The notes under the pieces are model-generated. The model saw only the letters and a program-made list of their open reading frames with translations, was not told the origin of the DNA and ran no database searches. Positions 17,079 through 45,263 of a DNA stretch of 64,000 nt are shown in pieces. How positions within the stretch are numbered: the first letter of the stretch is position 1; every line of letters starts with the position of its first letter. The stretch is from Diplonema japonicum. Taxonomy: Eukaryota > Protista > Euglenozoa: Diplonemea. Made by a program: the position numbers and the translations under genes. The DNA lies in the NCBI GenBank assembly GCA_964019335.1, contig OZ025648.1, positions 62,001 through 126,000 on the forward strand, given 5' to 3'.

Positions 17079-18479
17079 CTATCTATTAATGCTCCCCTTC
17101 TGGAGCATAGCCTTCGTTCCTATTGTCGCCTTTAAAGCTTTTCGTAGTCTCGACACGCGTTCTTTCTTGTATGTCCCTTTCAACTCCTGTAGCTTTTGCG
17201 CTGTCTGTCTTGATGCGAAGATCGGTCTCCTGTTAAAGCCTATTGCAGCCTTGCCTCCGATCGCTGTGAGCGACTTGACCCTCTTTGCCCCGTCCGCAGG
17301 GAAGGGGCGTCTTATCCGTCTCGTTCTGCACACTGCGTTGGCTCTCTCCACCAACAGCTTGATTCTGCGTGCCTTCCTCTGCATGTTGTAGACTCCCAGT
17401 GACTTACCGGTTGTCTCCTCAAAGTCGAGTGCAAGTTCAGCTGCCGAAACCTCCGAGTCGGTGTCGCCCTCCACCCATCGCAGCTTTCCCATCCATTCCA
17501 GTAGTGGTTCCCCGAATTGCTCCAGCAGTCCCACCACTGTCCCCAGCTGCGCTGTCGTCGGTACCGGGGTCACTTTGCCTGTCACTTCCCGCTCCCATGG
17601 TAGCTTCTTGTTGCCGCCTTCTGCCTGCATCAGCCCTTCGTCCCGCTTTTCCACCACCATTGCCAGGTATCGCTGCAGCTTCTCCAGGTGTTCGAACCCG
17701 TTCCCCCTTGGTAGGATGGCATGCAGCTCGAGGCAGAGCGGCCATCCCGTCCTGTCGCGCAGTGGTTCCATCTCCTCCCGTATCAGCTCCTCTCGTGCTG
17801 GCGGGCACTCGTACAGCTGGTGGCGTAGCAGTGTTACTGTGTCCGCATGCTTGGTCGGGCAGAGGTCACATTCAAATCCCGACTCGTCTTGTCCTTCATG
17901 CGCCGCTGGCTCGTCTTGATCTTCCTCTTCTTCGCTCCGTCCCTCGGACTCGTCGTCCTCATTCGTGGGGGGTACACACTTTGGTCCTGCTCTGGCATAC
18001 GGACTTAGGTAGGGGATCCCTCCCGCAATTACCCTCTTGATACAGAAAGCTAGATGGCGATCTTTAGCTGTCCTCCAGAGGTCATTCGTTTTGGGATCTG
18101 CTCCTTCCCCGAGTCCGCTGACCGTCTTCCGTTCCGTTGCTAGTGTCGCACTCCTGGCTGCCCTTACAGCCGCCCTGAAGGCGCTTCCTCGCTTGGGCCA
18201 CTCAAGTTCTGTGGCTATTTCCATCTTCTCCCAGTCCCATCCGATTCTCGGCATCCACCTGCATATCAGATTCCCCACCGGTCCCAAGGGGGTCCTCTGT
18301 GAGCCGTACCTCTGCACTATTTGTCGCACTCTCTGTCCAAGACCTGTCCTTTCCAGCGCGCTCGATATCACTTTTAGCGAGTGACAGATGACGTAGGACA
18401 ACGGGTCATTGATGTGTCCTTTCAGCAAAACCGTATTCACCGCTGCAGGCGATCGTCCTCGGAAGTGAGGCCCCCATAG
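17079..18479 (-). mobile_element. 5'-truncated non-LTR retrotransposon fragment (post-RT region and CCHC-type zinc finger)
   Basis: Stop-free frame of >450 codons with no ATG at its 5' end. Begins LWGPHFRGRSPAAVNTVLLKGHINDP and contains CDLC..RHQLYECP, resembling the zinc knuckle downstream of LINE RT domains. No RT catalytic motif, poly(A) tail or TSD recognised. Confidence 0.6.
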
Positions 18480-19461: not shown

Positions 19462-21576
19462 TCATATAGCCACGGTGCTAGAAGTAGTAGGTGGCCTTAC
19501 ACGGTTCTGCTCGTAGACAGACGGAGCAGGTGTGGGCCTCCTGAGAGCCATCGAGAATGGAGGGTCTTCCCTAAGCATTGCAAGTTGCGCTGAGACGGCC
19601 GACTGGCGTGAGTCAGGGGGGTTCCTTGTGCGGGGGACTGGCAGGCGGTGGTACGGCACGGGGTCGGGGCCTCTCGGACGGCCGCCAGTCCATTTGGGGG
19701 CGATGACGCCTGGGACAGCACCGTTGGTGCCCCACTTCGTGTTGTTCTGCTTGGGGGGTGCCTCTGTGCTGTCCTGGTAGATCTCGATCTGCTGATATAG
19801 ATTCTGCATGTCCTCCCCCACCCTGTCCCTCTGTCTTCGAAGGTCGTTGACCTCGCCTCGCACCCCCTCTGCGTACAGCTCTGTCTCGTACAACCCCAGC
19901 CGTTGGATCTGCACACGCTTCTTGCACACAGTACACAGCCCTGTGGCAATCCCCTCGTCTCTCACCTCTTCTGCAGTAACATGTGCATGCCACGTATTGC
20001 TGATGTCCCCCACCACGCTCCATTTTGCGTTGACCTCATGCGGCCGCCAGCCATTGTGAGGAGCTGCGCACTCTATCACCCTCTCGTCGCCACATTTCAC
20101 CACCCACACACCGTCCTCCGACGTGATCGATGCCTTTGGCTCACGGTCCCTTTCCCAGACAGGGTTTTCTACATCCGTACCCAGCAGGTTGTACTTACCC
20201 TCTGTTTTACCCTTTGGGCCGTGCAAACCTGGCCGCACCATGCCGTTGGCTGCAACTTCCTCCCATCCACCACCCACCACCACCCACAGTGAAGAGGGTA
20301 CCTCTGGTGGAGGGTAGTCGGGTGGGTTCTGTGCTGCCAATTCCCGTTGCCGCGACTCCTCAACAGCCATTCTTTCTTTCTCGAGCCTGCCCGCCTCCGC
20401 TTCCAGCAATGCATTCTTGCTACGGGACACTACAAGTGCTTTTTCGTACTTCCCCCTCTCGTTCTGTACCCTTTCAATCACGGTCTCAAAAGTGCGCCGC
20501 TTGTCAGGCGGCAAGTCATAGGGGTCCACCTTTACGGGTGTCACGACCCCGATGTTGTTCACGCTGTCGAGTCTCTTCGCGAGCTCTTGTTCGTCGATCA
20601 TGTGTGCAGTGGCCGCCCTGCACAGCAGATCCTTCACGTCCAGGTGGCTCACCTCCTTAGTAGCCGAGGCGCCGGCAGCGGTGTCAGCGTTCAGCGACTT
20701 CCACATGGAGATGGCTTCCATGTGCCGCATGGATGGCACCGTCACGTCGGTCAAGCAGGTGAATTCCTTCAAAGTGAACGGAAGGTGACTGTCGTAGCAG
20801 ATGTTGACAAGGTCGTCGAGAGGCGCGTATGGAAGGGTCCCCCTGCCGAGGACGATGTCCCTTTCGAGGTCGAGGTTCCGCACGTCCAACTGTTGCAACT
20901 GCTTCAAAGCTGCATCTCTCTCGGCTTCTGCTTCCTCTATCTGCTCACGGTGCGTTGCAAAAGTGTTCCGTGATGCTTTTCGAAGATCTTTTCTGAGAAG
21001 CATCGTAACGTGGGGTACGGTGCGGAGCAGTTCATTGGGCGACATGACAAGGTGCACTGCGGAAGTGTCGAGAAGGACAGCGAGGTCGTCCAAGGTGGCC
21101 TTCTGAGTGTAGGGGTCGAACCTTCCACGCTTGTTCATGATGCTGTCCCAGATGACCTCTGCTTGCTCCCGACGGATGCCTTCGAAACACAGGTCCGCCA
21201 CACGTAAGAAGGTGTCGAGCGTGATGCCATGCAGCTGGTGGCCCTGCCCAGGGAGGTGCACATCAGGATAGACATCTGGACTGCGACCTTGGATATCTAC
21301 ACACGTCTCGAAAAGCTCAGCAACCGCGTCACGGTACAGCTGCTCGTCCTTAGGGGTGGAGTAGCCGAGGTCGCTCGCTGTTATGATTCTTGCGTCGTTC
21401 TTAGGTGTCTGGAAGAAGAGATCGGGCGGCCGATCCACTTGACTTGCCGCCTTATGCTTTTCCTTCCAGCTCAACCCTTGCCACACAGCGTCAGTCACAC
21501 TGTCACGTGCTGCGCTCTTATGCCTCAGCGACAGGTCAGTCACAGCTCTGCGTGCCTCATCTTCTGTGAGACTCAT
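19462..21576 (-). CDS. Hypothetical protein with coiled-coil segments and a W-rich module
   Basis: ~704-codon ORF, ATG at 21576 right after a CAG acceptor, heptad-like E/K/R/L stretches. Confidence 0.75.
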   Translation of the reverse strand: MSLTEDEARRAVTDLSLRHKSAARDSVTDAVWQGLSWKEKHKAASQVDRPPDLFFQTPKNDARIITASDLGYSTPKDEQLYRDAVAELFETCVDIQGRSPDVYPDVHLPGQGHQLHGITLDTFLRVADLCFEGIRREQAEVIWDSIMNKRGRFDPYTQKATLDDLAVLLDTSAVHLVMSPNELLRTVPHVTMLLRKDLRKASRNTFATHREQIEEAEAERDAALKQLQQLDVRNLDLERDIVLGRGTLPYAPLDDLVNICYDSHLPFTLKEFTCLTDVTVPSMRHMEAISMWKSLNADTAAGASATKEVSHLDVKDLLCRAATAHMIDEQELAKRLDSVNNIGVVTPVKVDPYDLPPDKRRTFETVIERVQNERGKYEKALVVSRSKNALLEAEAGRLEKERMAVEESRQRELAAQNPPDYPPPEVPSSLWVVVGGGWEEVAANGMVRPGLHGPKGKTEGKYNLLGTDVENPVWERDREPKASITSEDGVWVVKCGDERVIECAAPHNGWRPHEVNAKWSVVGDISNTWHAHVTAEEVRDEGIATGLCTVCKKRVQIQRLGLYETELYAEGVRGEVNDLRRQRDRVGEDMQNLYQQIEIYQDSTEAPPKQNNTKWGTNGAVPGVIAPKWTGGRPRGPDPVPYHRLPVPRTRNPPDSRQSAVSAQLAMLREDPPFSMALRRPTPAPSVYEQNRVRPPTTSSTVAI

Positions 21577-22794
21577 CCTGATGGTGGTGGTGGTGAAAAG
21601 ATGCGGAGAAGGGGGAAAAAAAATACAAAAGAGGAAAGAGGGCAAATTGTGAAACGGTTACACGGCAGCAGTGTGTCCCCTCTTTTTCTTTTATTGAAAA
21701 AGAAAGAAAAATAGAAAAAAGACAAATAGGTGGATGGGGTGTAAAAACTATTTAAAAAAAAATAGCAAACCTTGTCGTTTTGGCTCTTCTCTCAAGTAAG
21801 GGAGAAAAGGTAAAGAAACCTGCAGAAAGTAAAGTAACCATACTGCATTTGAACAAAAGGCAGAAGAAGAAAAAAAAAAAAAAACTAAAAACGGAGAAAA
21901 GAGATTCGTTTTCACTGGTTCAAACTTCGCTAAAGGTAGAACTCATAGAGGGGTACATAGAAGGGCTACATAAAAAATACGAAAACTTGCTTGGTGCCGC
22001 ACTTCTTTTTTCTTTTTCTTGTTTGCAGATTTACAATCTGCAGTTCGCGGCCAATGCCCAGTGATGGTTTTTTTTAAAGTCCATGGGGAAGGGTAGGGGA
22101 AGGGTGGATCTGTGTTCAAGAGAGTAAATTTCGTTTCGTTGCAGAGGGAAAGGGAAGAACACGTAAACGTTGAAGTTAAAAACTCGTTCACCCCCGCGCC
22201 TCATATCCTTAGCACAAGGTGCTAAGCTACAATTTTGACCAACCAAGGCTATGAGCAATGGTTCTCCGCACACGTCCCTATCCTTGCGAGAAGACGGCGT
22301 AATGAGAAATAAAAAAAAAGGAGAAAGAAGAGAAGAAAAAAAAAAACGAATACAAGTCGGACGCTCCTGAATTGTGATTATTGCAATCCTCAGGAACCTG
22401 GCTTTTCTAGTTAACCCCCCTTTTATTTTTTTTTTTTCTTTTATCCCTTTCTGCATCAGGTCTTCGGAGGTTTCCTTTTCTAGAATGAGGGGTGTACACC
22501 CGATCTAAGAAAAGGAAAAAAAGGAAGATAGGGAAATGAAGACCTGGTAGGGAAAAAAAGTGGGAAAAAAAAAAAAAGAGGGGATGAAGGGTTAGGGAAC
22601 AAAAAAAAAATTCACTATGATAGGAAACGAAGTGGTTAGGCAACGGCCCACAAAAAAAAAAAAAGAAAAAAAATCTCATTTCTGTTATTTTTTCTTCTGT
22701 CTTGAACAAGGAGGGAATTCCGTGTTGGGGGTGAATCTAAGGATGGAAAAAAAAAAAAAAAGAAAAAAGAAGAAGAAAAAAAAAGAAGTAGCCA

Positions 22795-25700
22795 TCAAAC
22801 AACGACCTGTGTGAATCTGGTGGTGTCGTGCGGCCGCCGTTCTGCCATCTGGCACAAGCCCATGTACTTCTCTATGGCATCTGTCCTCTGCTTCCGCTTA
22901 CGGGAGTACATTACGATGACAGCAATGCCCAGACACAGGACGACTGCTGTCAGTGCTACTATCATTACAAGCAGGATATTCTTCGTTTTGTTATCGTTAC
23001 TCGCGCTGCTGCCGCTTGTGTCTGTAGGCGGGAGAGGGGGTCCCGACGGCTGCGGTGTCACACCAGTCTCATTGTACTGCCGTGCCTCCCCGCACGTCCA
23101 CCTCAGCTTAAACCCCTTCGCCACCCCGCCACTGTTCGTTGTGAACCTCATCACAGTGTTCCCCTTCCATGTCACTCTGTTGGGCATCGATGTCCCGCTC
23201 AGCTGTGTGGCCACCCCGTCCTCGTCAGTCACTGTCAGCAGATCGCGCCCACCTTCCGTGTCGAGCAACAGCCATTCGATGTTCACGTATCTCGCACATG
23301 TTACTCTCCAACACTTGTCCTCATCGTTCTGATAGCTTCCTCCCCCTACTGGATAGTCGATTGCTCCACCAGCTGCACTCGTGTCCAGCACGTAGTTTCC
23401 AAAACAAGTTGCTGCGCTCCCAACACGAGCCCCGCATGTGTAGCTAAAGCTGAAGCCGTCTTTACCAATCCCCGAGTTTGAGTAGAATCGCAACTTCACA
23501 TTTCCTTTCAACGACACAGCACTAGGTATCGCGATCCCTGAGTAGCTCATAACGCTGCCTAGCCCGTCTGTAAACACCAGCATATCCTGCTCACCCTTAG
23601 TGTTGAAAGCTAACCAATTTATGTTCACGTAGTCACTGCATGTGATTTGCCAACACTTATTATCGTTAGCGGGGTACGTCTGTCCTATCGGGTAGTCTAG
23701 CCTGCCACTTGGGCTGGTAAAGTTACTTTGCACGAGGTTGCCGCAGTTACCATCGTCTCCTTGCTCCTCAGGCCCACAGGTGTATACCAGTTGAAAGTTA
23801 TTCATTGATACCAAAGAATCGCTGCTGAAGCGCATCATCACCTCACCCTTCAACACTTTCACATGGTTTGCTATGTTTGCAGTGATTTCCAGCGTACGGC
23901 CATTACCATCCGTAAGGTACAACTTGTCGTTTGCACCCTCAAAGTCGACCAACGTCCACACGAAGTGTACGTACATGTTGCATGCTAATGACCAACAAAC
24001 TGTGTCATCGTTTTGATACTCCACATCGCTATTAAGGTAGTCAACAATGCCCGATGAACCTAATTCCTTCACCTTACCAAAGCAGTTCTCCTTGCTGCTG
24101 ACTACAGGCGTCATCTCAGCAGTATCAGGACCACACACCCAGCTGAAGGAGAAGCCACTGTTCTGGCTGCTGCTGTCACTTGTGAACCTCATCAGAACGT
24201 TCCCCTGGAAAGCCCTCTCACTCGGGATGCTCGACCCACTGAGGTCTGTCTCCACGCCCATCCCGTCAGTGACCTTCAGTGTGTCGTGTGTGGACTCTGT
24301 GTCGAAGGTGAGCCAGGAGATCACAACGTACTGTGAACAGGTGAATCTCCAGCACTTGCTGTCGTCGTTCGGGTAGTCTGCAGTGCCTGCAGGGTAGTCA
24401 ACCATCCCACTCGCGGCGCTGGTGTCAACAAGGTAGGTGTCAAAGCAGTTTCCTGCTGTCCCGGTCGGAGCAGGACCACACACCCAGCTGAAGGAGAAGC
24501 CACTGTTCTGGCTGCTGCTGTCGCTTGTGAACCTCATCAGAACGTTCCCCTGGAAAGCCCTCTCACTCGGGATGCTCGATCCACTCAAGTCTGTCTCCAC
24601 ACCAAGCCCATTGGTCACCTTCAGAACATCATTCGAAGATTCCGTGTCGAAGGTGAGCCAGGAGATCACAACGTACTGTGAACAGGTGAACCTCCAGCAC
24701 TTGCTGTCGTCGTTCGGGTAATCGGCTGTGCCTGCAGGGTAGTCGACCATCCCACTCGCGGCGCTGGTGTCAACAAGGTAGGTGTCAAAGCAGTTTCCTG
24801 CTGTCCCGGTCGGAGCAGGACCACACACCCAGTTGAAGGAGAAGCCACTGTTCTGGCTGCTGCTGTCACTTGTGAACCTCATCAGAACGTTCCCCTGGAA
24901 AGCCCTCTCACTCGGGATGCTCGATCCACTGAGGTCCGTCTCCACACCAAGCCCATTGGTCACCTTCAGAACATCATTCGAAGATTCCGTGTCGAAGGTG
25001 AGCCAGGAGATCACAACGTACTGTGAGCAGGTGAACCTCCAGCACTTGCTGTCGTCGTTCGGGTAGTCTGCCGTACCTGTGGTTGAGTTAGTAAAAATCA
25101 AAAACCGTGCACTGGACCAAAAAAGGCAAGAAATGACTGAAGCCCCAATTCATTGGAATACCATTCTTAATTTCTCTCGTGTTTTTTTACTATACCCTCC
25201 CCCCCCACTATGCCTTCCATTCATCAATCTTGGCATCCATGGTACTAGGGTTTATGTGTCAGACTGAATTGGCGCCGGGTGTATAGAAGCGGGAACTAAA
25301 AAGGCACAGGGGATGCCCTCAGTGAAAACAGCCCCTCATATACCCCTCACGGGTCCAGGCAGGATCAACACCTAGGGTAGGGTCACAACAGACTACTGCT
25401 AAACGTTGCAAAATCTCACACCCGTGATATGACATTCCCACAAGTAGGGTAGGGCCGTGTCAAGAAGCTAAAGGGACTCATAGAGAAGTACCCAGGAAAA
25501 CCAGTAGAGGTCTTATCAACACCTGCGTCTTCCAAAGGGCAGGGGGACTTCGCTCTGCAAACATAATCTGCCCGCGGGCAAAATTATTCGGGGATCCTTA
25601 CTTTCTCTTGTTGTTTGTGCGTGCCGGGTAGAAACTTGGAGAAGCTTATGAACCCGTAAACACGTTGCCAACGCTCCCCTTTTGTTTAGACAAGTCAAAG

Positions 25701-28700
25701 ACCCGTTCGTTCTTGCAAAAAAGAAGAAGGGGTTCACAGTACTCCAAATAAGAAAAACTCCCACAAAACATTCGTTTGATGATTATGATCATCATATAAT
25801 TTCTTGTTTTTGTTTAAACACACCTGCAGGGTAGTCAACCATCCCACTCGCGGCGCTGGTGTCAACAAGGTAGGTGTCAAAGCAGTTTCCCGCTGTCCCG
25901 GTCGGAGCAGGACCACACACCCAGCTGAAGGAGAAGCCACTGTTCTGGCTGCTGCTGTCGCTTGTGAACCTCATCAGAACGTTTCCCTGGAACGCCCTCT
26001 CACTTGGAATGCTCGATCCACTGAGGTCCGTCTCCACACCAAGCCCATTGGTCACCTTCAGAACATCATTCGAAGATTCCGTGTCGAAGGTGAGCCAGGA
26101 GATCACAACGTACTGTGAACAGGTGAACCTCCAGCACTTGCTGTCGTCGTTCGGGTAATCGGCTGTGCCTGCAGGGTAGTCGACCATCCCACTCGCGGCG
26201 CTGGTGTCAACAAGGTAGGTGTCAAAGCAGTTTCCCGCTGTCCCGGTCGGAGCAGGACCACACACCCAGCTGAAGGAGAAGCCACTGTTCTGGCTGCTGC
26301 TGTCACTTGTGAACCTCATCAGAACGTTCCCCTGGAAAGCCCTCTCACTCGGGATGCTCGACCCACTGAGGTCTGTCTCCACGCCCATCCCGTCAGTGAC
26401 CTTCAGTGTGTCGTGTGTGGACTCTGTGTCGAAGGTGAGCCAGGAGATCACAACGTACTGTGAACAGGTGAATCTCCAGCACTTGCTGTCGTCGTTCGGG
26501 TAGTCTGCAGTGCCTGCAGGGTAGTCAACCATCCCACTCGCGGCGCTGGTGTCAACAAGGTAGGTGTCAAAGCAGTTTCCTGCTGTCCCGGTCGGAGCAG
26601 GACCACACACCCAGCTGAAGGAGAAGCCACTGTTCTGGCTGCTGCTGTCGCTTGTGAACCTCATCAGAACGTTCCCCTGGAAAGCCCTCTCACTCGGGAT
26701 GCTCGATCCACTCAAGTCTGTCTCCACACCAAGCCCATTGGTCACCTTCAGAACATCATTCGAAGATTCCGTGTCGAAGGTGAGCCAGGAGATCACAACG
26801 TACTGTGAACAGGTGAACCTCCAGCACTTGCTGTCGTCGTTCGGGTAATCGGCTGTGCCTGCAGGGTAGTCGACCATCCCACTCGCGGCGCTGGTGTCAA
26901 CAAGGTAGGTGTCAAAGCAGTTTCCTGCTGTCCCGGTCGGAGCAGGACCACACACCCAGTTGAAGGAGAAGCCACTGTTCTGGCTGCTGCTGTCACTTGT
27001 GAACCTCATCAGAACGTTCCCCTGGAAAGCCCTCTCACTCGGGATGCTCGATCCACTGAGGTCCGTCTCCACACCAAGCCCATTGGTCACCTTCAGAACA
27101 TCATTCGAAGATTCCGTGTCGAAGGTGAGCCAGGAGATCACAACGTACTGTGAGCAGGTGAACCTCCAGCACTTGCTGTCGTCGTTCGGGTAGTCTGCCG
27201 TACCTGTGGTTGAGTTAGTAAAAATCAAAAACCGTGCACTGGACCAAAAAAGGCAAGAAATGACTGAAGCCCCAATTCATTGGAATACCATTCTTAATTT
27301 CTCTCGTGTTTTTTTACTATACCCTCCCCCCCCACTATGCCTTCCATTCATCAATCTTGGCATCCATGGTACTAGGGTTTATGTGTCAGACTGAATTGGC
27401 GCCGGGTGTATAGAAGCGGGAACTAAAAAGGCACAGGGGATGCCCTCAGTGAAAACAGCCCCTCATATACCCCTCACGGGTCCAGGCAGGATCAACACCT
27501 AGGGTAGGGTCACAACAGACTACTGCTAAACGTTGCAAAATCTCACACCCGTGATATGACATTCCCACAAGTAGGGTAGGGCCGTGTCAAGAAGCTAAAG
27601 GGACTCATAGAGAAGTACCCAGGAAAACCAGTAGAGGTCTTATCAACACCTGCGTCTTCCAAAGGGCAGGGGGACTTCGCTCTGCAAACATAATCTGCCC
27701 GCGGGCAAAATTATTCGGGGATCCTTACTTTCTCTTGTTGTTTGTGCGTGCCGGGTAGAAACTTGGAGAAGCTTATGAACCCGTAAACACGTTGCCAACG
27801 CTCCCCTTTTGTTTAGACAAGTCAAAGACCCGTTCGTTCTTGCAAAAAAGAAGAAGGGGTTCACAGTACTCCAAATAAGAAAAACTCCCACAAAACATTC
27901 GTTTGATGATTATGATCATCATATAATTTCTTGTTTTTGTTTAAACACACCTGCAGGGTAGTCAACCATCCCACTCGCGGCGCTGGTGTCAACAAGGTAG
28001 GTGTCAAAGCAGTTTCCCGCTGTCCCGGTCGGAGCAGGACCACACACCCAGCTGAAGGAGAAGCCACTGTTCTGGCTGCTGCTGTCGCTTGTGAACCTCA
28101 TCAGAACGTTTCCCTGGAACGCCCTCTCACTTGGAATGCTCGATCCACTGAGGTCCGTCTCCACACCAAGCCCATTGGTCACCTTCAGAACATCATTCGA
28201 AGATTCCGTGTCGAAGGTGAGCCAGGAGATCACAACGTACTGTGAACAGGTGAACCTCCAGCACTTGCTGTCGTCGTTCGGGTAATCGGCTGTGCCTGCA
28301 GGGTAGTCGACCATCCCACTCGCGGCGCTGGTGTCAACAAGGTAGGTGTCAAAGCAGTTTCCCGCTGTCCCGGTCGGAGCAGGACCACACACCCAGCTGA
28401 AGGAGAAGCCACTGTTCTGGCTGCTGCTGTCACTTGTGAACCTCATCAGAACGTTCCCCTGGAAAGCCCTCTCACTCGGGATGCTCGACCCACTGAGGTC
28501 TGTCTCCACGCCCATCCCGTCAGTGACCTTCAGTGTGTCGTGTGTGGACTCTGTGTCGAAGGTGAGCCAGGAGATCACAACGTACTGTGAACAGGTGAAT
28601 CTCCAGCACTTGCTGTCGTCGTTCGGGTAGTCTGCAGTGCCTGCAGGGTAGTCAACCATCCCACTCGCGGCGCTGGTGTCAACAAGGTAGGTGTCAAAGC

Positions 28701-31700
28701 AGTTTCCTGCTGTCCCGGTCGGAGCAGGACCACACACCCAGCTGAAGGAGAAGCCACTGTTCTGGCTGCTGCTGTCGCTTGTGAACCTCATCAGAACGTT
28801 CCCCTGGAAAGCCCTCTCACTCGGGATGCTCGATCCACTCAAGTCTGTCTCCACACCAAGCCCATTGGTCACCTTCAGAACATCATTCGAAGATTCCGTG
28901 TCGAAGGTGAGCCAGGAGATCACAACGTACTGTGAACAGGTGAACCTCCAGCACTTGCTGTCGTCGTTCGGGTAATCGGCTGTGCCTGCAGGGTAGTCGA
29001 CCATCCCACTCGCGGCGCTGGTGTCAACAAGGTAGGTGTCAAAGCAGTTTCCTGCTGTCCCGGTCGGAGCAGGACCACACACCCAGTTGAAGGAGAAGCC
29101 ACTGTTCTGGCTGCTGCTGTCACTTGTGAACCTCATCAGAACGTTCCCCTGGAAAGCCCTCTCACTCGGGATGCTCGATCCACTGAGGTCCGTCTCCACA
29201 CCAAGCCCATTGGTCACCTTCAGAACATCATTCGAAGATTCCGTGTCGAAGGTGAGCCAGGAGATCACAACGTACTGTGAGCAGGTGAACCTCCAGCACT
29301 TGCTGTCGTCGTTCGGGTAGTCTGCCGTACCTGTGGTTGAGTTAGTAAAAATCAAAAACCGTGCACTGGACCAAAAAAGGCAAGAAATGACTGAAGCCCC
29401 AATTCATTGGAATACCATTCTTAATTTCTCTCGTGTTTTTTTACTATACCCTCCCCCCCCACTATGCCTTCCATTCATCAATCTTGGCATCCATGGTACT
29501 AGGGTTTATGTGTCAGACTGAATTGGCGCCGGGTGTATAGAAGCGGGAACTAAAAAGGCACAGGGGATGCCCTCAGTGAAAACAGCCCCTCATATACCCC
29601 TCACGGGTCCAGGCAGGATCAACACCTAGGGTAGGGTCACAACAGACTACTGCTAAACGTTGCAAAATCTCACACCCGTGATATGACATTCCCACAAGTA
29701 GGGTAGGGCCGTGTCAAGAAGCTAAAGGGACTCATAGAGAAGTACCCAGGAAAACCAGTAGAGGTCTTATCAACACCTGCGTCTTCCAAAGGGCAGGGGG
29801 ACTTCGCTCTGCAAACATAATCTGCCCGCGGGCAAAATTATTCGGGGATCCTTACTTTCTCTTGTTGTTTGTGCGTGCCGGGTAGAAACTTGGAGAAGCT
29901 TATGAACCCGTAAACACGTTGCCAACGCTCCCCTTTTGTTTAGACAAGTCAAAGACCCGTTCGTTCTTGCAAAAAAGAAGAAGGGGTTCACAGTACTCCA
30001 AATAAGAAAAACTCCCACAAAACATTCGTTTGATGATTATGATCATCATATAATTTCTTGTTTTTGTTTAAACACACCTGCAGGGTAGTCAACCATCCCA
30101 CTCGCGGCGCTGGTGTCAACAAGGTAGGTGTCAAAGCAGTTTCCCGCTGTCCCGGTCGGAGCAGGACCACACACCCAGCTGAAGGAGAAGCCACTGTTCT
30201 GGCTGCTGCTGTCGCTTGTGAACCTCATCAGAACGTTTCCCTGGAACGCCCTCTCACTTGGAATGCTCGATCCACTGAGGTCCGTCTCCACACCAAGCCC
30301 ATTGGTCACCTTCAGAACATCATTCGAAGATTCCGTGTCGAAGGTGAGCCAGGAGATCACAACGTACTGTGAACAGGTGAACCTCCAGCACTTGCTGTCG
30401 TCGTTCGGGTAATCGGCTGTGCCTGCAGGGTAGTCGACCATCCCACTCGCGGCGCTGGTGTCAACAAGGTAGGTGTCAAAGCAGTTTCCCGCTGTCCCGG
30501 TCGGAGCAGGACCACACACCCAGCTGAAGGAGAAGCCACTGTTCTGGCTGCTGCTGTCACTTGTGAACCTCATCAGAACGTTCCCCTGGAAAGCCCTCTC
30601 ACTCGGGATGCTCGACCCACTGAGGTCTGTCTCCACGCCCATCCCGTCAGTGACCTTCAGTGTGTCGTGTGTGGACTCTGTGTCGAAGGTGAGCCAGGAG
30701 ATCACAACGTACTGTGAACAGGTGAATCTCCAGCACTTGCTGTCGTCGTTCGGGTAGTCTGCAGTGCCTGCAGGGTAGTCAACCATCCCACTCGCGGCGC
30801 TGGTGTCAACAAGGTAGGTGTCAAAGCAGTTTCCTGCTGTCCCGGTCGGAGCAGGACCACACACCCAGCTGAAGGAGAAGCCACTGTTCTGGCTGCTGCT
30901 GTCGCTTGTGAACCTCATCAGAACGTTCCCCTGGAAAGCCCTCTCACTCGGGATGCTCGATCCACTCAAGTCTGTCTCCACACCAAGCCCATTGGTCACC
31001 TTCAGAACATCATTCGAAGATTCCGTGTCGAAGGTGAGCCAGGAGATCACAACGTACTGTGAACAGGTGAACCTCCAGCACTTGCTGTCGTCGTTCGGGT
31101 AATCGGCTGTGCCTGCAGGGTAGTCGACCATCCCACTCGCGGCGCTGGTGTCAACAAGGTAGGTGTCAAAGCAGTTTCCTGCTGTCCCGGTCGGAGCAGG
31201 ACCACACACCCAGTTGAAGGAGAAGCCACTGTTCTGGCTGCTGCTGTCACTTGTGAACCTCATCAGAACGTTCCCCTGGAAAGCCCTCTCACTCGGGATG
31301 CTCGATCCACTGAGGTCCGTCTCCACACCAAGCCCATTGGTCACCTTCAGAACATCATTCGAAGATTCCGTGTCGAAGGTGAGCCAGGAGATCACAACGT
31401 ACTGTGAGCAGGTGAACCTCCAGCACTTGCTGTCGTCGTTCGGGTAGTCTGCCGTACCTGTGGTTGAGTTAGTAAAAATCAAAAACCGTGCACTGGACCA
31501 AAAAAGGCAAGAAATGACTGAAGCCCCAATTCATTGGAATACCATTCTTAATTTCTCTCGTGTTTTTTTACTATACCCTCCCCCCCCACTATGCCTTCCA
31601 TTCATCAATCTTGGCATCCATGGTACTAGGGTTTATGTGTCAGACTGAATTGGCGCCGGGTGTATAGAAGCGGGAACTAAAAAGGCACAGGGGATGCCCT

Positions 31701-34700
31701 CAGTGAAAACAGCCCCTCATATACCCCTCACGGGTCCAGGCAGGATCAACACCTAGGGTAGGGTCACAACAGACTACTGCTAAACGTTGCAAAATCTCAC
31801 ACCCGTGATATGACATTCCCACAAGTAGGGTAGGGCCGTGTCAAGAAGCTAAAGGGACTCATAGAGAAGTACCCAGGAAAACCAGTAGAGGTCTTATCAA
31901 CACCTGCGTCTTCCAAAGGGCAGGGGGACTTCGCTCTGCAAACATAATCTGCCCGCGGGCAAAATTATTCGGGGATCCTTACTTTCTCTTGTTGTTTGTG
32001 CGTGCCGGGTAGAAACTTGGAGAAGCTTATGAACCCGTAAACACGTTGCCAACGCTCCCCTTTTGTTTAGACAAGTCAAAGACCCGTTCGTTCTTGCAAA
32101 AAAGAAGAAGGGGTTCACAGTACTCCAAATAAGAAAAACTCCCACAAAACATTCGTTTGATGATTATGATCATCATATAATTTCTTGTTTTTGTTTAAAC
32201 ACACCTGCAGGGTAGTCAACCATCCCACTCGCGGCGCTGGTGTCAACAAGGTAGGTGTCAAAGCAGTTTCCCGCTGTCCCGGTCGGAGCAGGACCACACA
32301 CCCAGCTGAAGGAGAAGCCACTGTTCTGGCTGCTGCTGTCGCTTGTGAACCTCATCAGAACGTTTCCCTGGAACGCCCTCTCACTTGGAATGCTCGATCC
32401 ACTGAGGTCCGTCTCCACACCAAGCCCATTGGTCACCTTCAGAACATCATTCGAAGATTCCGTGTCGAAGGTGAGCCAGGAGATCACAACGTACTGTGAA
32501 CAGGTGAACCTCCAGCACTTGCTGTCGTCGTTCGGGTAATCGGCTGTGCCTGCAGGGTAGTCGACCATCCCACTCGCGGCGCTGGTGTCAACAAGGTAGG
32601 TGTCAAAGCAGTTTCCCGCTGTCCCGGTCGGAGCAGGACCACACACCCAGCTGAAGGAGAAGCCACTGTTCTGGCTGCTGCTGTCACTTGTGAACCTCAT
32701 CAGAACGTTCCCCTGGAAAGCCCTCTCACTCGGGATGCTCGACCCACTGAGGTCTGTCTCCACGCCCATCCCGTCAGTGACCTTCAGTGTGTCGTGTGTG
32801 GACTCTGTGTCGAAGGTGAGCCAGGAGATCACAACGTACTGTGAACAGGTGAATCTCCAGCACTTGCTGTCGTCGTTCGGGTAGTCTGCAGTGCCTGCAG
32901 GGTAGTCAACCATCCCACTCGCGGCGCTGGTGTCAACAAGGTAGGTGTCAAAGCAGTTTCCTGCTGTCCCGGTCGGAGCAGGACCACACACCCAGCTGAA
33001 GGAGAAGCCACTGTTCTGGCTGCTGCTGTCGCTTGTGAACCTCATCAGAACGTTCCCCTGGAAAGCCCTCTCACTCGGGATGCTCGATCCACTCAAGTCT
33101 GTCTCCACACCAAGCCCATTGGTCACCTTCAGAACATCATTCGAAGATTCCGTGTCGAAGGTGAGCCAGGAGATCACAACGTACTGTGAACAGGTGAACC
33201 TCCAGCACTTGCTGTCGTCGTTCGGGTAATCGGCTGTGCCTGCAGGGTAGTCGACCATCCCACTCGCGGCGCTGGTGTCAACAAGGTAGGTGTCAAAGCA
33301 GTTTCCTGCTGTCCCGGTCGGAGCAGGACCACACACCCAGTTGAAGGAGAAGCCACTGTTCTGGCTGCTGCTGTCACTTGTGAACCTCATCAGAACGTTC
33401 CCCTGGAAAGCCCTCTCACTCGGGATGCTCGATCCACTGAGGTCCGTCTCCACACCAAGCCCATTGGTCACCTTCAGAACATCATTCGAAGATTCCGTGT
33501 CGAAGGTGAGCCAGGAGATCACAACGTACTGTGAGCAGGTGAACCTCCAGCACTTGCTGTCGTCGTTCGGGTAGTCTGCCGTACCTGTGGTTGAGTTAGT
33601 AAAAATCAAAAACCGTGCACTGGACCAAAAAAGGCAAGAAATGACTGAAGCCCCAATTCATTGGAATACCATTCTTAATTTCTCTCGTGTTTTTTTACTA
33701 TACCCTCCCCCCCCACTATGCCTTCCATTCATCAATCTTGGCATCCATGGTACTAGGGTTTATGTGTCAGACTGAATTGGCGCCGGGTGTATAGAAGCGG
33801 GAACTAAAAAGGCACAGGGGATGCCCTCAGTGAAAACAGCCCCTCATATACCCCTCACGGGTCCAGGCAGGATCAACACCTAGGGTAGGGTCACAACAGA
33901 CTACTGCTAAACGTTGCAAAATCTCACACCCGTGATATGACATTCCCACAAGTAGGGTAGGGCCGTGTCAAGAAGCTAAAGGGACTCATAGAGAAGTACC
34001 CAGGAAAACCAGTAGAGGTCTTATCAACACCTGCGTCTTCCAAAGGGCAGGGGGACTTCGCTCTGCAAACATAATCTGCCCGCGGGCAAAATTATTCGGG
34101 GATCCTTACTTTCTCTTGTTGTTTGTGCGTGCCGGGTAGAAACTTGGAGAAGCTTATGAACCCGTAAACACGTTGCCAACGCTCCCCTTTTGTTTAGACA
34201 AGTCAAAGACCCGTTCGTTCTTGCAAAAAAGAAGAAGGGGTTCACAGTACTCCAAATAAGAAAAACTCCCACAAAACATTCGTTTGATGATTATGATCAT
34301 CATATAATTTCTTGTTTTTGTTTAAACACACCTGCAGGGTAGTCAACCATCCCACTCGCGGCGCTGGTGTCAACAAGGTAGGTGTCAAAGCAGTTTCCCG
34401 CTGTCCCGGTCGGAGCAGGACCACACACCCAGCTGAAGGAGAAGCCACTGTTCTGGCTGCTGCTGTCGCTTGTGAACCTCATCAGAACGTTTCCCTGGAA
34501 CGCCCTCTCACTTGGAATGCTCGATCCACTGAGGTCCGTCTCCACACCAAGCCCATTGGTCACCTTCAGAACATCATTCGAAGATTCCGTGTCGAAGGTG
34601 AGCCAGGAGATCACAACGTACTGTGAACAGGTGAACCTCCAGCACTTGCTGTCGTCGTTCGGGTAATCGGCTGTGCCTGCAGGGTAGTCGACCATCCCAC

Positions 34701-37700
34701 TCGCGGCGCTGGTGTCAACAAGGTAGGTGTCAAAGCAGTTTCCCGCTGTCCCGGTCGGAGCAGGACCACACACCCAGCTGAAGGAGAAGCCACTGTTCTG
34801 GCTGCTGCTGTCACTTGTGAACCTCATCAGAACGTTCCCCTGGAAAGCCCTCTCACTCGGGATGCTCGACCCACTGAGGTCTGTCTCCACGCCCATCCCG
34901 TCAGTGACCTTCAGTGTGTCGTGTGTGGACTCTGTGTCGAAGGTGAGCCAGGAGATCACAACGTACTGTGAACAGGTGAATCTCCAGCACTTGCTGTCGT
35001 CGTTCGGGTAGTCTGCAGTGCCTGCAGGGTAGTCAACCATCCCACTCGCGGCGCTGGTGTCAACAAGGTAGGTGTCAAAGCAGTTTCCTGCTGTCCCGGT
35101 CGGAGCAGGACCACACACCCAGCTGAAGGAGAAGCCACTGTTCTGGCTGCTGCTGTCGCTTGTGAACCTCATCAGAACGTTCCCCTGGAAAGCCCTCTCA
35201 CTCGGGATGCTCGATCCACTCAAGTCTGTCTCCACACCAAGCCCATTGGTCACCTTCAGAACATCATTCGAAGATTCCGTGTCGAAGGTGAGCCAGGAGA
35301 TCACAACGTACTGTGAACAGGTGAACCTCCAGCACTTGCTGTCGTCGTTCGGGTAATCGGCTGTGCCTGCAGGGTAGTCGACCATCCCACTCGCGGCGCT
35401 GGTGTCAACAAGGTAGGTGTCAAAGCAGTTTCCTGCTGTCCCGGTCGGAGCAGGACCACACACCCAGTTGAAGGAGAAGCCACTGTTCTGGCTGCTGCTG
35501 TCACTTGTGAACCTCATCAGAACGTTCCCCTGGAAAGCCCTCTCACTCGGGATGCTCGATCCACTGAGGTCCGTCTCCACACCAAGCCCATTGGTCACCT
35601 TCAGAACATCATTCGAAGATTCCGTGTCGAAGGTGAGCCAGGAGATCACAACGTACTGTGAGCAGGTGAACCTCCAGCACTTGCTGTCGTCGTTCGGGTA
35701 GTCTGCCGTACCTGTGGTTGAGTTAGTAAAAATCAAAAACCGTGCACTGGACCAAAAAAGGCAAGAAATGACTGAAGCCCCAATTCATTGGAATACCATT
35801 CTTAATTTCTCTCGTGTTTTTTTACTATACCCTCCCCCCCCACTATGCCTTCCATTCATCAATCTTGGCATCCATGGTACTAGGGTTTATGTGTCAGACT
35901 GAATTGGCGCCGGGTGTATAGAAGCGGGAACTAAAAAGGCACAGGGGATGCCCTCAGTGAAAACAGCCCCTCATATACCCCTCACGGGTCCAGGCAGGAT
36001 CAACACCTAGGGTAGGGTCACAACAGACTACTGCTAAACGTTGCAAAATCTCACACCCGTGATATGACATTCCCACAAGTAGGGTAGGGCCGTGTCAAGA
36101 AGCTAAAGGGACTCATAGAGAAGTACCCAGGAAAACCAGTAGAGGTCTTATCAACACCTGCGTCTTCCAAAGGGCAGGGGGACTTCGCTCTGCAAACATA
36201 ATCTGCCCGCGGGCAAAATTATTCGGGGATCCTTACTTTCTCTTGTTGTTTGTGCGTGCCGGGTAGAAACTTGGAGAAGCTTATGAACCCGTAAACACGT
36301 TGCCAACGCTCCCCTTTTGTTTAGACAAGTCAAAGACCCGTTCGTTCTTGCAAAAAAGAAGAAGGGGTTCACAGTACTCCAAATAAGAAAAACTCCCACA
36401 AAACATTCGTTTGATGATTATGATCATCATATAATTTCTTGTTTTTGTTTAAACACACCTGCAGGGTAGTCAACCATCCCACTCGCGGCGCTGGTGTCAA
36501 CAAGGTAGGTGTCAAAGCAGTTTCCCGCTGTCCCGGTCGGAGCAGGACCACACACCCAGCTGAAGGAGAAGCCACTGTTCTGGCTGCTGCTGTCGCTTGT
36601 GAACCTCATCAGAACGTTTCCCTGGAACGCCCTCTCACTTGGAATGCTCGATCCACTGAGGTCCGTCTCCACACCAAGCCCATTGGTCACCTTCAGAACA
36701 TCATTCGAAGATTCCGTGTCGAAGGTGAGCCAGGAGATCACAACGTACTGTGAACAGGTGAACCTCCAGCACTTGCTGTCGTCGTTCGGGTAATCGGCTG
36801 TGCCTGCAGGGTAGTCGACCATCCCACTCGCGGCGCTGGTGTCAACAAGGTAGGTGTCAAAGCAGTTTCCCGCTGTCCCGGTCGGAGCAGGACCACACAC
36901 CCAGCTGAAGGAGAAGCCACTGTTCTGGCTGCTGCTGTCACTTGTGAACCTCATCAGAACGTTCCCCTGGAAAGCCCTCTCACTCGGGATGCTCGACCCA
37001 CTGAGGTCTGTCTCCACGCCCATCCCGTCAGTGACCTTCAGTGTGTCGTGTGTGGACTCTGTGTCGAAGGTGAGCCAGGAGATCACAACGTACTGTGAAC
37101 AGGTGAATCTCCAGCACTTGCTGTCGTCGTTCGGGTAGTCTGCAGTGCCTGCAGGGTAGTCAACCATCCCACTCGCGGCGCTGGTGTCAACAAGGTAGGT
37201 GTCAAAGCAGTTTCCTGCTGTCCCGGTCGGAGCAGGACCACACACCCAGCTGAAGGAGAAGCCACTGTTCTGGCTGCTGCTGTCGCTTGTGAACCTCATC
37301 AGAACGTTCCCCTGGAAAGCCCTCTCACTCGGGATGCTCGATCCACTCAAGTCTGTCTCCACACCAAGCCCATTGGTCACCTTCAGAACATCATTCGAAG
37401 ATTCCGTGTCGAAGGTGAGCCAGGAGATCACAACGTACTGTGAACAGGTGAACCTCCAGCACTTGCTGTCGTCGTTCGGGTAATCGGCTGTGCCTGCAGG
37501 GTAGTCGACCATCCCACTCGCGGCGCTGGTGTCAACAAGGTAGGTGTCAAAGCAGTTGGCGGAGGTACCAGTTACGACACCGCAGGTGAAGGACAGTGTG
37601 AAGCCATCACCAGTGGAGGATGAGTCAGAGGTGAAGTGCAGCGTTGTGTCACCAGTGGCGATGAGCGTTGCAGGCAGGGAAGATCCCGTGACCTCTGTGG

Positions 37701-37932
37701 TAGCGGCGGCAGTATCGGTGATGGCCAGCTTGTCGCAACAAGACTCAGCATCAACCATCGTAAAGGTTATTGTGACTGATGAGGGACACGTGATGGTCCA
37801 GCAAATATCCTCGTTATCGCTGTATGCCACACCACCTGCGGGGTAGTCAAGCGTGCCTGACGTAAGTGGGCTGCATGGCGCAGAAGATGCCAGCTGGAGG
37901 CACAGAAGAGTGCATAACCATGAGATTCTCAT
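22795..37932 (-). CDS. Giant type I membrane protein with 30 tandem CUB domains (cubilin-like architecture), ~3551 aa, 7 exons
   Basis: Signal peptide MRISWLCTLLCLQLASSA at 37932. Exons 36459-37932, 34332-35711, 32205-33584, 30078-31457, 27951-29330, 25824-27203 and 22795-25076, separated by six 747-nt phase-1 introns (GTGTGT..TACTAACTCAACCACAG). Splicing restores DYPAG|TADYPND exactly as at intron-less repeat junctions. CUB motifs YPND..CW, FDTE..D.L.V, FTSD.S..GF; TM ILLVMIVALTAVVLCLGIAVIVMY followed by RKRK. Confidence 0.88.
24126..37557. repeat. Higher-order tandem repeat: 2127-bp unit (4 x 345-bp CUB monomers + 747-bp intron), ~6.3 copies
   Basis: Identical ORF sets recur with an exact 2127-bp offset (25792, 27919, 30046, 32173, 34300, 36427); 345-bp sub-period within exons. 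Confidence 0.97.
25077..25823 (-). other. 747-nt spliceosomal intron; further copies at 27204-27950, 29331-30077, 31458-32204, 33585-34331 and 35712-36458
   Basis: GT..AG ends, TACTAAC branch-point match ending 10 nt before the intron 3' end, phase-1 frame restoration. Confidence 0.88.
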
Positions 37933-38731: not shown

Positions 38732-38800
38732 CCGTAAACACGTTGCCAACGTTTCCCTTTTTGCTTAGACAAGTCAAAAACTTGCTCTGCAAAAAAAAAA
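38732..38800 (+). repeat. Short dispersed repeat shared with the CUB-gene intron, followed by an A-run
   Basis: CCGTAAACACGTTGCCAACG..TTAGACAAGTCAAA matches 25654-25699 (first 20 nt identical); both copies are followed by TGC plus an A-run. Confidence 0.75.
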
Positions 38801-38933
38801 GGGGGGGGAAGAAGGTGGTAGGGTTTATTTTATTTTTTTGTTGTACGTTTTGCTTCCAATATTAAATCTTTTTTTTTGAAAACTATTGAGTAACATTTTT
38901 CGCCATTCAAACTTTTTTTTTTCAATAATTTAA

Positions 38934-40732
38934 CCATCTACCAACGGACCATTTTTGCCCACCAGGGGGTAAATTTTCAAAACTTCAAAAAAAGCTATTC
39001 TAGCGCAACGCCGGGGCTATATGCCCCCGAAAATGCCTCCAGATGTCCCAATTCTAGAGAGAGGGTGCCCACAGCAGGGCCCACCCCCACAACATTGTCA
39101 AAAATATCGTTCCTGAAGTGCTCGAGAGGGGGTACAAAAAACAAGTCAAAAAATCGACTGTAAAATTCTATAAAAAGCTATTTAAGGCCTTCTTGTCGCG
39201 GTTCGTACGTGCCCCAGGGCTGGGGGACTTCTTTTTTGACCCCGAGAGGGGTTTCTGGGGGGTATCCCCGGCAAGGTGGCAGTCTTTGAAGCACGGAGTC
39301 ACGCAAAGTTGTACAAGCAGGCTGAACACTGAAATAGGGGTCTTTTCGACCTGAAATGCTTGCACCGCACGTTGCACTACTTTTTCGGGGAAATGGTCCC
39401 AGAAGGTACTGTCACGGCGCATTGGGGTCTCAGAGCACTCGTTCTGTGTTTCGGGGCATGGTATTGGGGCAGCCTGCTCTGTAGTTGACTTTATCTGTTG
39501 TTTAGACTGCCTCCCTAGTAGCCCTTCGATGACTGCCTCTTTGAAAGGCGTCAATACACTGTCGTTCGTACTCAGGGTGTTGGGGGGCAGGCTTCTTTCC
39601 AAACAAGCCAAGCATTCGCCAGAGATTTACCTAACAAGTACGAAAATACTTTTAGGGGCCACTTTTAAGTCATAAGGGTGCGTTTATGGCGTTTTGTCAC
39701 AGCGTCACCCAGCGTCGGTTCCGCCCATTGCGGTGTTGTAAATATGCACTTGGTGGGGAACAAGATGTCCTTTCCGGCTTTCATTCTCTTTTGGCGGACG
39801 GTCAAATTTGACTTCACTGGAACATCCAACGTCGATAGAAAGCACACAGGCTTGATGTCATGCCACGTTGTGGTGCAAAGGATGCTCGCGTGCTGGTGGA
39901 ACTGTGTCCCCACGGGATGCGCGTCCTTGGGCTTGCGGCCTCGCTTCTTTGGGGCATCCATGATCTCCGGGAGGCCTTCGCGATAGGTAGAAGTCAGCAC
40001 GCTTGTTTGTTTCGCTGTGGAAACACAGATTTCCCAGAATAGTCAAAAAGCGGTCTCTTGACATGACGGTAGCGTACCCAGGTGTAGTTGAGAAACGTGG
40101 AGCCAGTGCACCAGTAATCAGAATAATCTGGCTTGATATCCAAGTCCATCGACAAAAGGACACCTAGGAAGGTACGCAGAGAAGCAGCATCGAGATCCAG
40201 GGAGACACCTTTTTTAGCCGCATTTGCTACATTGTTCGAAGTTATGACCCGAATAAAGTTTGGACGAGCATTTGGGAGAATATATGGAATGGCGTTGAGC
40301 CTCTGATGTCAAAACAGGGTCCACAAGGATTCCGATCTTCACGAAACCGGATGCCTTCCGACTGCTCCGGCTTTGCCGTCCAATCACCCTGCTGTGACTC
40401 GGAATCGGTCGAATTCGTGTCAGAATCACTGTTTGTATCAAAATTGCATAATAGGGATGAGCCATCAGTGCTGCCATCACTCATAACGTCCTCTTCCGGC
40501 CTCTTTCCGGGCGCCTTTTTTTGAAGTGATTTTTAAGGGTAAATTTGGGCTGGCGTTTTTTTTTATTTTTTCATTTTCTTGTTAAGTTAGGGCAGCATTT
40601 AGTTTATATTTTTCATATTTTCCGCGCAGGACCCCGCCGGCAAGAAAGGGCCGGGCCGTATTGCATTGAAAGCCCTTTGCGTAAAAGATTTTTTTTCAAA
40701 TCGTCTATATATAGACGCTCGTTGATAGATGG
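38934..40732 (-). mobile_element. piggyBac-family DNA transposon, non-autonomous and internally deleted, 1799 bp
   Basis: TTAA at 38930-38933 and 40733-40736. 13-bp TIR CCATCTA(C/T)CAACG with 12/13 match. Frameshifted transposase remnants: acidic N-terminus, TPFHIF, MSRDRFLTILGNLCF, WHDIKPVCFLST, YNTAMGGTD, LCVTPCFKDCH. Confidence 0.9.
39280..40484 (-). pseudogene. Degraded piggyBac transposase
   Basis: Motifs spread over several frames with stops. The segment between MSRDRF and W.D.K.V..LST is far too short to hold the first two catalytic aspartates. Confidence 0.8.
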
Positions 40733-44700: not shown

Positions 44701-45263
44701 CTTCCAGCCAGGCCCGTCGTATTGTCCAGCTTTGCAGAGAGGTTGGCAACGAGGTCCCTGAGGTCTTGGAACTCCTGCGAAGTCGGTTGGGAGGGGGTGG
44801 AAACAGGAGCGGAAGTAGGTGCATCGGTGGGGGGTATCCCAGGTGCACTGGTGGGTTCAGCTGTGACCGGTGGAGGGACATTGCATTTCGTGCACGCAGT
44901 CAAAGATTGGATCTGTGTCTGCATGGCTTCCAACCTTGTCTCAAGGGTCGTGACACGCTGCTGCAGTGCGTCGGTGCCCACAGTCTTCTTCCAAAGCACA
45001 CCGTTGCTCCATTCAATGACCCCGAGCTTTGCGTTGCTCATACCACGCACCCCGATGGCCTGAAGCAGCCCACCGCTGGGCACCACCTCCTCGTCAAGGA
45101 GCGTGGCACTGCCGTACTTGCTGGTCAAGACACACGAACCAGTGGCGTCGTCTGCCGTCACACTCATCACATCCTCAGTAGCACTGTCATACCATTCGCC
45201 CTTCATGTCTATACACCCACCTGCCGCGCCTGCAACGCATGTGAGCAGCAGAAACGCTCGCAT
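41743..45263 (-). CDS. Secreted multidomain protein: coiled coil, cupredoxin/phytocyanin-like domain, large uncharacterised domain and His-motif C-terminus, ~1138 aa
   Basis: Signal peptide MRAFLLLTCVAGAAG. Exons 42135-45263, 41979-42080 and 41743-41928 via introns 42081-42134 (54 nt, in frame) and 41929-41978 (50 nt). GDTLVF..NVWQ..FDECDF..L..GTWFFG pattern; IHNHANTHH, TRHNDY, GHNH, AHTH, CPDGH. Confidence 0.8.

Follow-up and report, generated by a model that had tools for sequence, protein, structure and literature searches.

A predicted 30-CUB surface protein gene of Diplonema japonicum containing an exon-intron higher-order repeat

Coding higher-order repeats are known and include the Olduvai/NBPF triplets. 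In the human LPA gene, the KIV-2 unit measures 5.5 kb, comprises two exons, and occurs as near-identical copies whose number ranges from 1 to more than 40 (PMC4378929). Cubilin is a multiligand endocytic receptor of animals and has a long chain of CUB domains. It also contains 8 EGF domains and an N-terminal stretch that binds amnionless; it is devoid of a transmembrane (TM) helix and is anchored by amnionless (PMC5799345, PMC6283879). Here we analyze positions 22795-37932, on the minus strand, of a stretch of 64,000 nucleotides (nt) from the diplonemid Diplonema japonicum (assembly GCA_964019335.1, contig OZ025648.1, positions 62,001 to 126,000), which is referred to as the window and whose numbering is used throughout. 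The locus is best explained as a single gene with a recently amplified or homogenized block of about six copies that encodes a surface protein with 30 CUB domains. Its product would be a type I membrane protein with a single signal peptide in exon 1 and a single TM helix in exon 7, and we assign a probability of about 0.75 to this reading as a whole. Diplonemids are among the most abundant heterotrophic protists of the sea, and, to our knowledge, their surface proteins are almost entirely uncharacterized.

Gene model and predicted protein

Seven long open reading frames (ORFs), namely, one of 547 amino acids (aa), five identical ones of 478 aa, and one of 768 aa, are arranged in series on the minus strand between positions 22795 and 38070. 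The segment 22795-37932 is very probably a single intact protein gene of D. japonicum with seven exons and six introns. The introns correspond to six identical intervals of 747 nt (25077-25823 and its equivalents at steps of 2127 nt) that have GT-AG borders and are in phase 1. They read G/GTGTGT ... TACTAACTCAACCACAG/G and end in TACTAAC..CACAG/G, where the slash marks the border. Each 478-aa ORF terminates 9 codons past G/GTGTGT, and the next ORF is CUB-like directly after TACTAACTCAACCACAG/G. The removal of an interval recreates DYPAG/TADYP, the monomer-monomer junction that is found within exons, and restores both the frame and the register; at the predicted exon-exon junction, the exon end ...CCCTGCAG is joined to GTACGGCAGAC... 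The published introns of D. japonicum are GT-AG in 98% of the cases and have the 5' site (G)/GTATG, a 3' CAG, an unusually A-rich tract, and a median length of 41 nt; the signals of the array introns agree with the published logos (PMC12621601). An initial annotation of this DNA had proposed that the 478-aa ORFs are exons of one gene. The splice signals, the frame, the register, and the lack of an ATG or a signal peptide for stand-alone units support this proposal, and the joining of the exons in mRNA is supported indirectly, by the depth pattern of a run described below.

The exons of 1474, 5 x 1380, and 2282 nt add up to 3,552 codons including the stop, which by this arithmetic gives 3,551 residues. 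All 10,656 coding nt are open when the exons are read one by one with the phase passed on, and the sole stop is the terminal one at 22795-22797. The predicted product consists of a signal peptide, 30 CUB domains, a short Pro/Thr/Ser stalk, one TM helix, and a tail of 36 aa. The putative start codon (37930-37932) is the first ATG downstream of a pyrimidine tract and AG, and the predicted signal peptide of 20 aa (37873-37932), beginning with MRISW, has a hydrophobic core. The coding part of exon 1 (36459-37932; 1474 nt) comprises the signal peptide, a unique N-terminal CUB domain termed CUB1 (37558-37881), the repeated monomers B, C, and D, and the first 64 nt of monomer A. CUB1 contains the Pfam CUB stretch 71-161 of the exon-1 ORF and shares 39% identity with monomer B. 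Intron 1 (35712-36458; 747 nt, phase 1, GT-AG, with a branch-point-like TACTAAC motif) is followed by exon 2 (34332-35711), which has 1380 nt and holds 4 CUB equivalents. Intron 2 (33585-34331) is identical to intron 1, and the series then continues with exon 3 (32205-33584), intron 3 (31458-32204), exon 4 (30078-31457), intron 4 (29331-30077), exon 5 (27951-29330), intron 5 (27204-27950), exon 6 (25824-27203), and intron 6 (25077-25823), with all of these exons having 1380 nt. The coding part of exon 7 (22795-25076; 2282 nt including the stop) contains the rest of A, monomers B and C, three unique membrane-proximal CUB domains (23062-24087 overall; U1 at 23749-24087, U2 at 23407-23748, and U3 at 23062-23406), the stalk, the TM helix, and the tail. 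The predicted TM helix of 24 aa (22906-22977) has a 19-residue Kyte-Doolittle mean of 3.1 and is followed by the basic stretch SRKRKQR, with which the putative cytoplasmic tail of 36 aa (22798-22905) starts. The tail contains YMGL, which fits the YxxPhi pattern and could be read as such a motif. The structure given in the initial annotation, i.e., the ORFs, the period of 2127 bp, the introns, the 30 CUB domains, the signal peptide, the TM helix, and the tail, holds in all these respects and is located on the minus strand.

The assignment of the domains to the CUB family, also made in that annotation, agrees with a profile scan in which the exon ORFs reached 84-95 bits each with Pfam family CUB (PF00431), as compared to a cut-off of 21.4; single CUB domains scored 26-27.6 bits in a scan of the genome. 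All protein searches were made by exon or by domain. In a sequence search of the PDB, one monomer matched the PCPE-1 CUB domains (E value of 2.4e-5). An AlphaFold2 model of monomer B, based on a subfamily alignment of 21 rows, had a predicted local distance difference test (pLDDT) score of 90.9, whereas a single-sequence model of two monomers had a pLDDT of 33 and was unusable. In a Foldseek search, the model of monomer B matched the CUB domains of PCPE-1, neuropilin, TSG-6, MASP-1 (CUB2), C1r, and cubilin with a probability of 1.00 and TM scores of 0.71-0.80. The CUB beta-sandwich of about 110 aa is confirmed by the Pfam score, the PDB sequence match, and the fold. No EGF or other above-threshold Pfam domain was found in any of the exons.

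The conservation of residues Y26, E52, D56, and D92 reaches at least 90% in the subfamily alignment, and these four align with the calcium-site residues of PCPE-1. This set of Tyr, Glu, Asp, and Asp is kept in 28 of the 30 domains. The exceptions are the membrane-proximal domains U2 (Glu to Lys and last Asp to Asn) and U3 (last Asp to Asn), located at 23062-23748, in which acidic calcium-site residues were lost. By their site residues, the domains are thus predicted to belong to the calcium-binding subset of CUB domains. The first CUB disulfide pair also aligns (NC... / KCW).

A higher-order repeat of about six units

When the sequence is shifted by 2127 bp, there are 0 mismatches over 24126-37557 (13,432 bp, corresponding to 6.31 units, with 11,305 positions compared). 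This perfectly periodic region on the minus strand contains 26 monomers of 345 bp and 6 introns, and the inner period of 345 bp was also detected by Tandem Repeats Finder. One unique N-terminal, 26 repeated (3 + 5 x 4 + 3), and three unique C-terminal domains make up the total of 30. Both the absence of differences between the 2127-bp units, introns included, and the order of the near-identical monomers, B-C-D-intron-(A-B-C-D-intron)x5-A-B-C, had been noted in the initial annotation. Our data agree, with the nuance that a count that starts at the first Cys gives the order B-C-D-A for the unit and places the intron 64 nt inside A and not exactly between D and A.

For the comparison of monomer A, the 64 and 281 nt from either side of the intron were put in register. 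The DNA identity of the monomers was 91.3-97.7% overall, with 97.7% for B and D, 96.8% for A and B, 96.2% for A and D, and 91-92% for C and the others. Monomers are thus 2-9% divergent and the four-monomer units 0% divergent, which is the pattern of a true higher-order repeat. B and D are separated by 8 nt changes and 0 aa changes, and A and B by 11 nt changes and 1 aa change. Because the differences between monomers are overwhelmingly synonymous, the domains appear to have been under purifying selection. Monomer C (36868-37212 and six other copies) differs by 5-6 aa that cluster within 12 residues at the E52-D56 loop of the predicted calcium site, so that one domain in four may present a different binding surface. 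Since the divergence is 0% between units, as compared to 2-9% between monomers and about 11% for a dispersed element in the intron, the data support a very recent expansion or homogenization of the four-CUB unit, as had been proposed in the initial annotation for expansion.

A number of further features characterize the array. (i) The non-repetitive core of the intron (529 nt) has exactly six occurrences in the whole assembly of 62.5 Mb, all of them within this array, and, at the DNA level, the array locus has no counterpart elsewhere in the genome. (ii) As 1380 coding nt are located between two phase-1 boundaries, the gain or loss of one unit would keep the frame and change the ectodomain by exactly four CUB domains, in agreement with the length step that had been proposed. 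(iii) Both borders of the intron read CAG/GT (25077/25823 and equivalents), and uninterrupted monomers have CAG/GC at this site. The borders may stem from an insertion that took place at a proto-splice site and was accompanied by a short duplication, and they fit a plain constraint on splice sites equally well.

The D. japonicum YPF1604 assembly, peDipJapo1.1, was generated with hifiasm from 102x HiFi data, and 7.93 Gb in 8.4e5 HiFi reads correspond to a mean read length of about 9.4 kb (PMC13598402). We assessed the array size by dividing the k-mer depth of Logan contigs by the number of occurrences of the 31-mers of the contig in the assembly; contig depth as such is not a copy number, and ratios were compared within one run. 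Three DNA-like runs from two studies were used, X1, X2, and X4, of which X4 stems from a separate study of 2020. The depth per assembled copy was 178-239 in X1 (unique sequence, 197), 631-745 in X2 (unique sequence, 695), and 11.4-17.7 in X4 (unique sequence, 15.8). Depth was approximately linear over contigs that are assembled at 1, 6 (intron), 7 (C specific), 13 (B and D), and 15-19 copies, and this relation held to about 20% in both deep runs and to about 28% in the low-coverage run. These runs thus fit the assembled copy numbers and exclude a locus with 1-2 units. The array can therefore be taken as real, with about six units.

It is improbable that the array is an assembly artifact in which the true number of units is markedly different or the copies are not identical, with hifiasm having chosen an arbitrary layout and rare variants having been averaged away. 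The array of 13.4 kb is longer than the mean HiFi read, so that the assembler and the depth data are the basis for both the exact number of units and the absolute identity of the copies; furthermore, a mis-layered consensus would also give perfect identity, and Logan contigs drop rare variants. However, k-mer depth follows the copy number over the entire range stated above in all three DNA-like runs, including that of the separate study, the intron-to-unique depth ratios in these runs are 5.5-7.3, no variant letters were seen in the array in their contigs, and there are no Ns in the window.

Unequal crossover is the standard explanation for arrays of this type. An older duplication of monomers that evolved under purifying selection may have given rise to A to D, and a block of four monomers and the intron (2127 bp) would then have been amplified to, or kept homogeneous in, about six identical copies. 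The route could have been gene conversion or homologous recombination out of register, and an origin by unequal crossover is plausible. The initial annotation had pointed to the B-C pair at both ends of the array as a sign of unequal crossover; this pair only restates the copy number of 6.31, and it fits unequal crossover without discriminating it from other routes.

Expression and competing explanations

A further run, X6, showed a different depth pattern. Its exon contigs had a depth of 2.9-3.8 per copy and the intron of 0.4 per copy, corresponding to an approximately 8-fold excess of exons, and both exon-intron boundary contigs that were seen in all three DNA runs were missing. The depth of X6 is not DNA-like, since it amounts to 82-117 over the upstream intergenic or untranslated region (UTR) and to 12,484 over the dispersed element. 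The pattern fits poly(A) RNA from which the intron was removed. Equally sized runs of the same study hold fractions of 0.55, 0.43, 0.26, and 0.19 of the locus. A protein search with the exon-1 ORF gave no match at an E value of ≤1e-3, a result that is uninformative given the word prefilter and the length band of this search.

Several observations weigh against the single-gene reading of a 30-CUB protein. (i) The introns, with 747 nt, are far above the published median length (PMC12621601). (ii) No spliced junction contig, i.e., one that skips the 747 nt, is present among the contigs listed for four runs. (iii) X6 was called RNA-like from its depth pattern, and its record does not state RNA; in addition, its depth over the unique part of exon 1 is zero. 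(iv) No transcript-derived protein of this gene was detected in the protein libraries, which include the D. japonicum Trinity proteome. (v) The second canonical Cys pair of CUB domains corresponds to a gap or to non-Cys residues in the alignment with PCPE-1, and another Cys pair (FTC / WVC), conserved in the subfamily, takes its place in the sequence. (vi) In addition to the limited HiFi read length mentioned above, it is possible that the number of units is off by about one or that two haplotypes average six. As the Trinity proteome is among the libraries in which no transcript-derived protein was found, expression of the gene is likely to be low or condition specific.

Neighboring domains that are 95-100% identical are generally thought to be prone to misfolding. 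Together with the missing transcript-derived protein and the low depth in the RNA-like run (about 3 per copy), this would fit a functionless accident, namely, an expansion that is real but young, silent or barely expressed, and heading to decay. We consider this explanation quite improbable, since the entire coding sequence has remained open, the changes between monomers are overwhelmingly synonymous, the calcium-site residues are conserved in 28 of the 30 domains, and exon sequence is present in RNA-like runs with a share that varies between samples.

Tandem gene arrays are common in Euglenozoa, and the lineage of D. japonicum has trans-splicing and gene clusters that run in one direction. 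An array of separate genes, in which each 2127-bp unit is a cistron of its own that encodes a 4-CUB protein, undergoes trans-splicing at the AG, and has its polyadenylation site in the spacer, would match this background, the location of nearly all long ORFs of the window on the minus strand, a branch point, an A-rich tract, and an AG that could equally serve trans-splicing, and the fact that the cis-spliced junction was not seen directly, yet it is the least probable of the explanations, since (i) internal units lack a signal peptide and have their first ATG only after about 74 codons although they encode disulfide-rich extracellular domains, (ii) the unit begins 64 nt inside a CUB domain and the GT...AG pair restores frame and register exactly, (iii) the only signal peptide is found in the first exon and the only TM helix in the last, and (iv) X6 depth is zero over the 145 nt past the would-be stop, i.e., the would-be 3' UTR, whereas the exons are covered.

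Under the single-gene reading, the product may function as a long, multivalent surface protein that binds ligands in a Ca2+-dependent manner, either as an adhesin or as a capture or endocytic receptor for prey or substrate. Because 28 of the 30 CUB domains keep the Tyr/Glu/Asp/Asp set, a Ca2+-dependent multivalent ligand-binding role appears most likely, and a receptor or adhesin of this type is plausible from the sequence. We also considered, as a doubtful extension, a contingency locus in which the unit number varies by haplotype, clone, or life cycle stage in steps of 4 CUB domains and thereby tunes the reach and avidity of a Ca2+-dependent receptor for prey capture or substrate adhesion; retention of the first intron, with a stop 9 codons in, would produce a secreted 4-CUB isoform. 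If true, this would be the first length-variable CUB receptor described outside animals and a natural experiment on the folding of 26 nearly identical neighboring domains by a cell.

The data show that D. japonicum has a large CUB family, one member of which appears to have just been stretched to 30 domains by the copying of an exon-intron block. The locus offers a tractable model for the growth of domain arrays by a higher-order repeat that includes an intron, for in-frame variation in ectodomain length, and for the folding of runs of near-identical domains. It also holds a warning for annotators, since ORF calling that is blind to introns splits this gene into seven pieces, i.e., the first, the last, and the five identical 478-aa ORFs. 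The value of the case is incremental and not field-changing.

Genomic neighborhood, relatives, and known systems

All six introns contain a diverged copy, of about 89% identity, of a dispersed structured element of about 125 nt (25610-25732 and its equivalents at steps of 2127 nt, minus strand). The element has several hundred copies, as evidenced by a k-mer depth of 240-750 times that of unique sequence in the DNA runs and by at least 438 candidates in the genome scan. It occurs in either orientation, invariably with a T-run in front and with CTCTTTTT at its end, and its genomic copies are nearly identical to each other. Since the intron copy is only 89% identical to these genomic relatives, the insertion of the element predates the amplification of the unit. 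Its predicted fold is stable, with -40.9 kcal/mol and a z score of -3.2. Neither the intron nor the canonical copies of the element gave a credible match to an Rfam family, and the element may be a small-RNA gene or resemble a short interspersed element (SINE). A partial copy is located at 38732-38804, and genomic copies are found in the sequences L001-L008 around positions 1500-1616. In runs of two other organisms, X11 and X12, 6-9% of the words sampled from the locus are present, and this share may correspond to the dispersed element or to a conserved piece.

The window contains 28 ORFs with a length of 250 aa or more. The minus strand has 23 of them, and the other five, on the plus strand, overlap with ORFs of the minus strand. 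The window is thus a one-directional gene cluster, as in other Euglenozoa. No Pfam family was found for four neighboring ORFs (17079-18440, 19462-21645, 39168-39611, and 41964-45263).

The genome of D. japonicum contains dozens of CUB genes on other contigs, with at most 30% identity to the present gene (C80:255-307 kb, C33:98-300 kb, C7:818-835 kb, C66:401-406 kb, C94:36 kb, and others). Their open frames cover 550-3,169 aa, and several of them are found in tandem clusters. A HMMER search with the unique C-terminal 443 aa against 1.84 billion representatives retrieved only 120 matches, the best of which were at 30-36% identity. The ten top-ranked clusters comprise D. japonicum paralogues (EukProt), "CUB domain-containing proteins" of Aphanomyces astaci, krill proteins, and unnamed ENA contigs; none of the named clusters among these ten best-ranked of the 120 matches is called cubilin. 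The partner domains in these relatives are astacin, WSC, and M64 peptidase, and one D. japonicum paralogue known from a transcript combines CUB and WSC. A literature search found no published link between diplonemids and CUB domains.

A comparison with known systems leads to the following conclusions. (i) The multi-CUB proteins of protists, namely, those of A. astaci (1,500-1,900 aa) and the D. japonicum paralogues, belong to the same divergent CUB subfamily, at the identities of 30-36% given above; however, none of those checked has a perfect exon-intron higher-order array, and their partner domains differ. (ii) With cubilin, the predicted protein shares a long chain of CUB domains (30 as compared to 27), the acidic calcium-site residues, and the fold (match to 3kq4). 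In contrast, it has no EGF domains, a CUB domain directly after the signal peptide, and its own TM helix with a basic tail; its domains are near identical whereas those of cubilin have diverged, and no specific sequence relationship was found among the ten best-ranked clusters. The term "cubilin-like" of the initial annotation therefore stands for the number of CUB domains and the calcium-site residues but not for the domain architecture or the ancestry, with protist CUB proteins being the nearest relatives; judged by these features, the product is not a cubilin relative, and the proposed convergence is reasonable. (iii) As in higher-order repeats of the alpha-satellite type, diverged monomers are arranged in homogenized multimeric units, a pattern that marks unequal crossover or gene conversion at the period of the unit, but the present array is coding, includes a predicted spliceosomal intron, and is limited to about six units. 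(iv) By its architecture, the closest genomic analogue is human LPA KIV-2, which likewise consists of an intragenic unit of exon and intron in near-identical copies that adds whole domains in frame and is flanked by unique relatives. The unit described here differs in that it measures 2.1 kb, combines one exon of four CUB domains with one intron, contains four distinguishable monomers, and is found in a unicellular euglenozoan. Whereas the copy number of KIV-2 varies, about six units were found here for one strain in runs from two studies. As a gene for a surface protein that could vary in length by whole domains, the locus is a clean but not unprecedented case, and it adds a member to two kinds that are known already, namely, multi-CUB surface proteins and intragenic copy number repeats of exon and intron.

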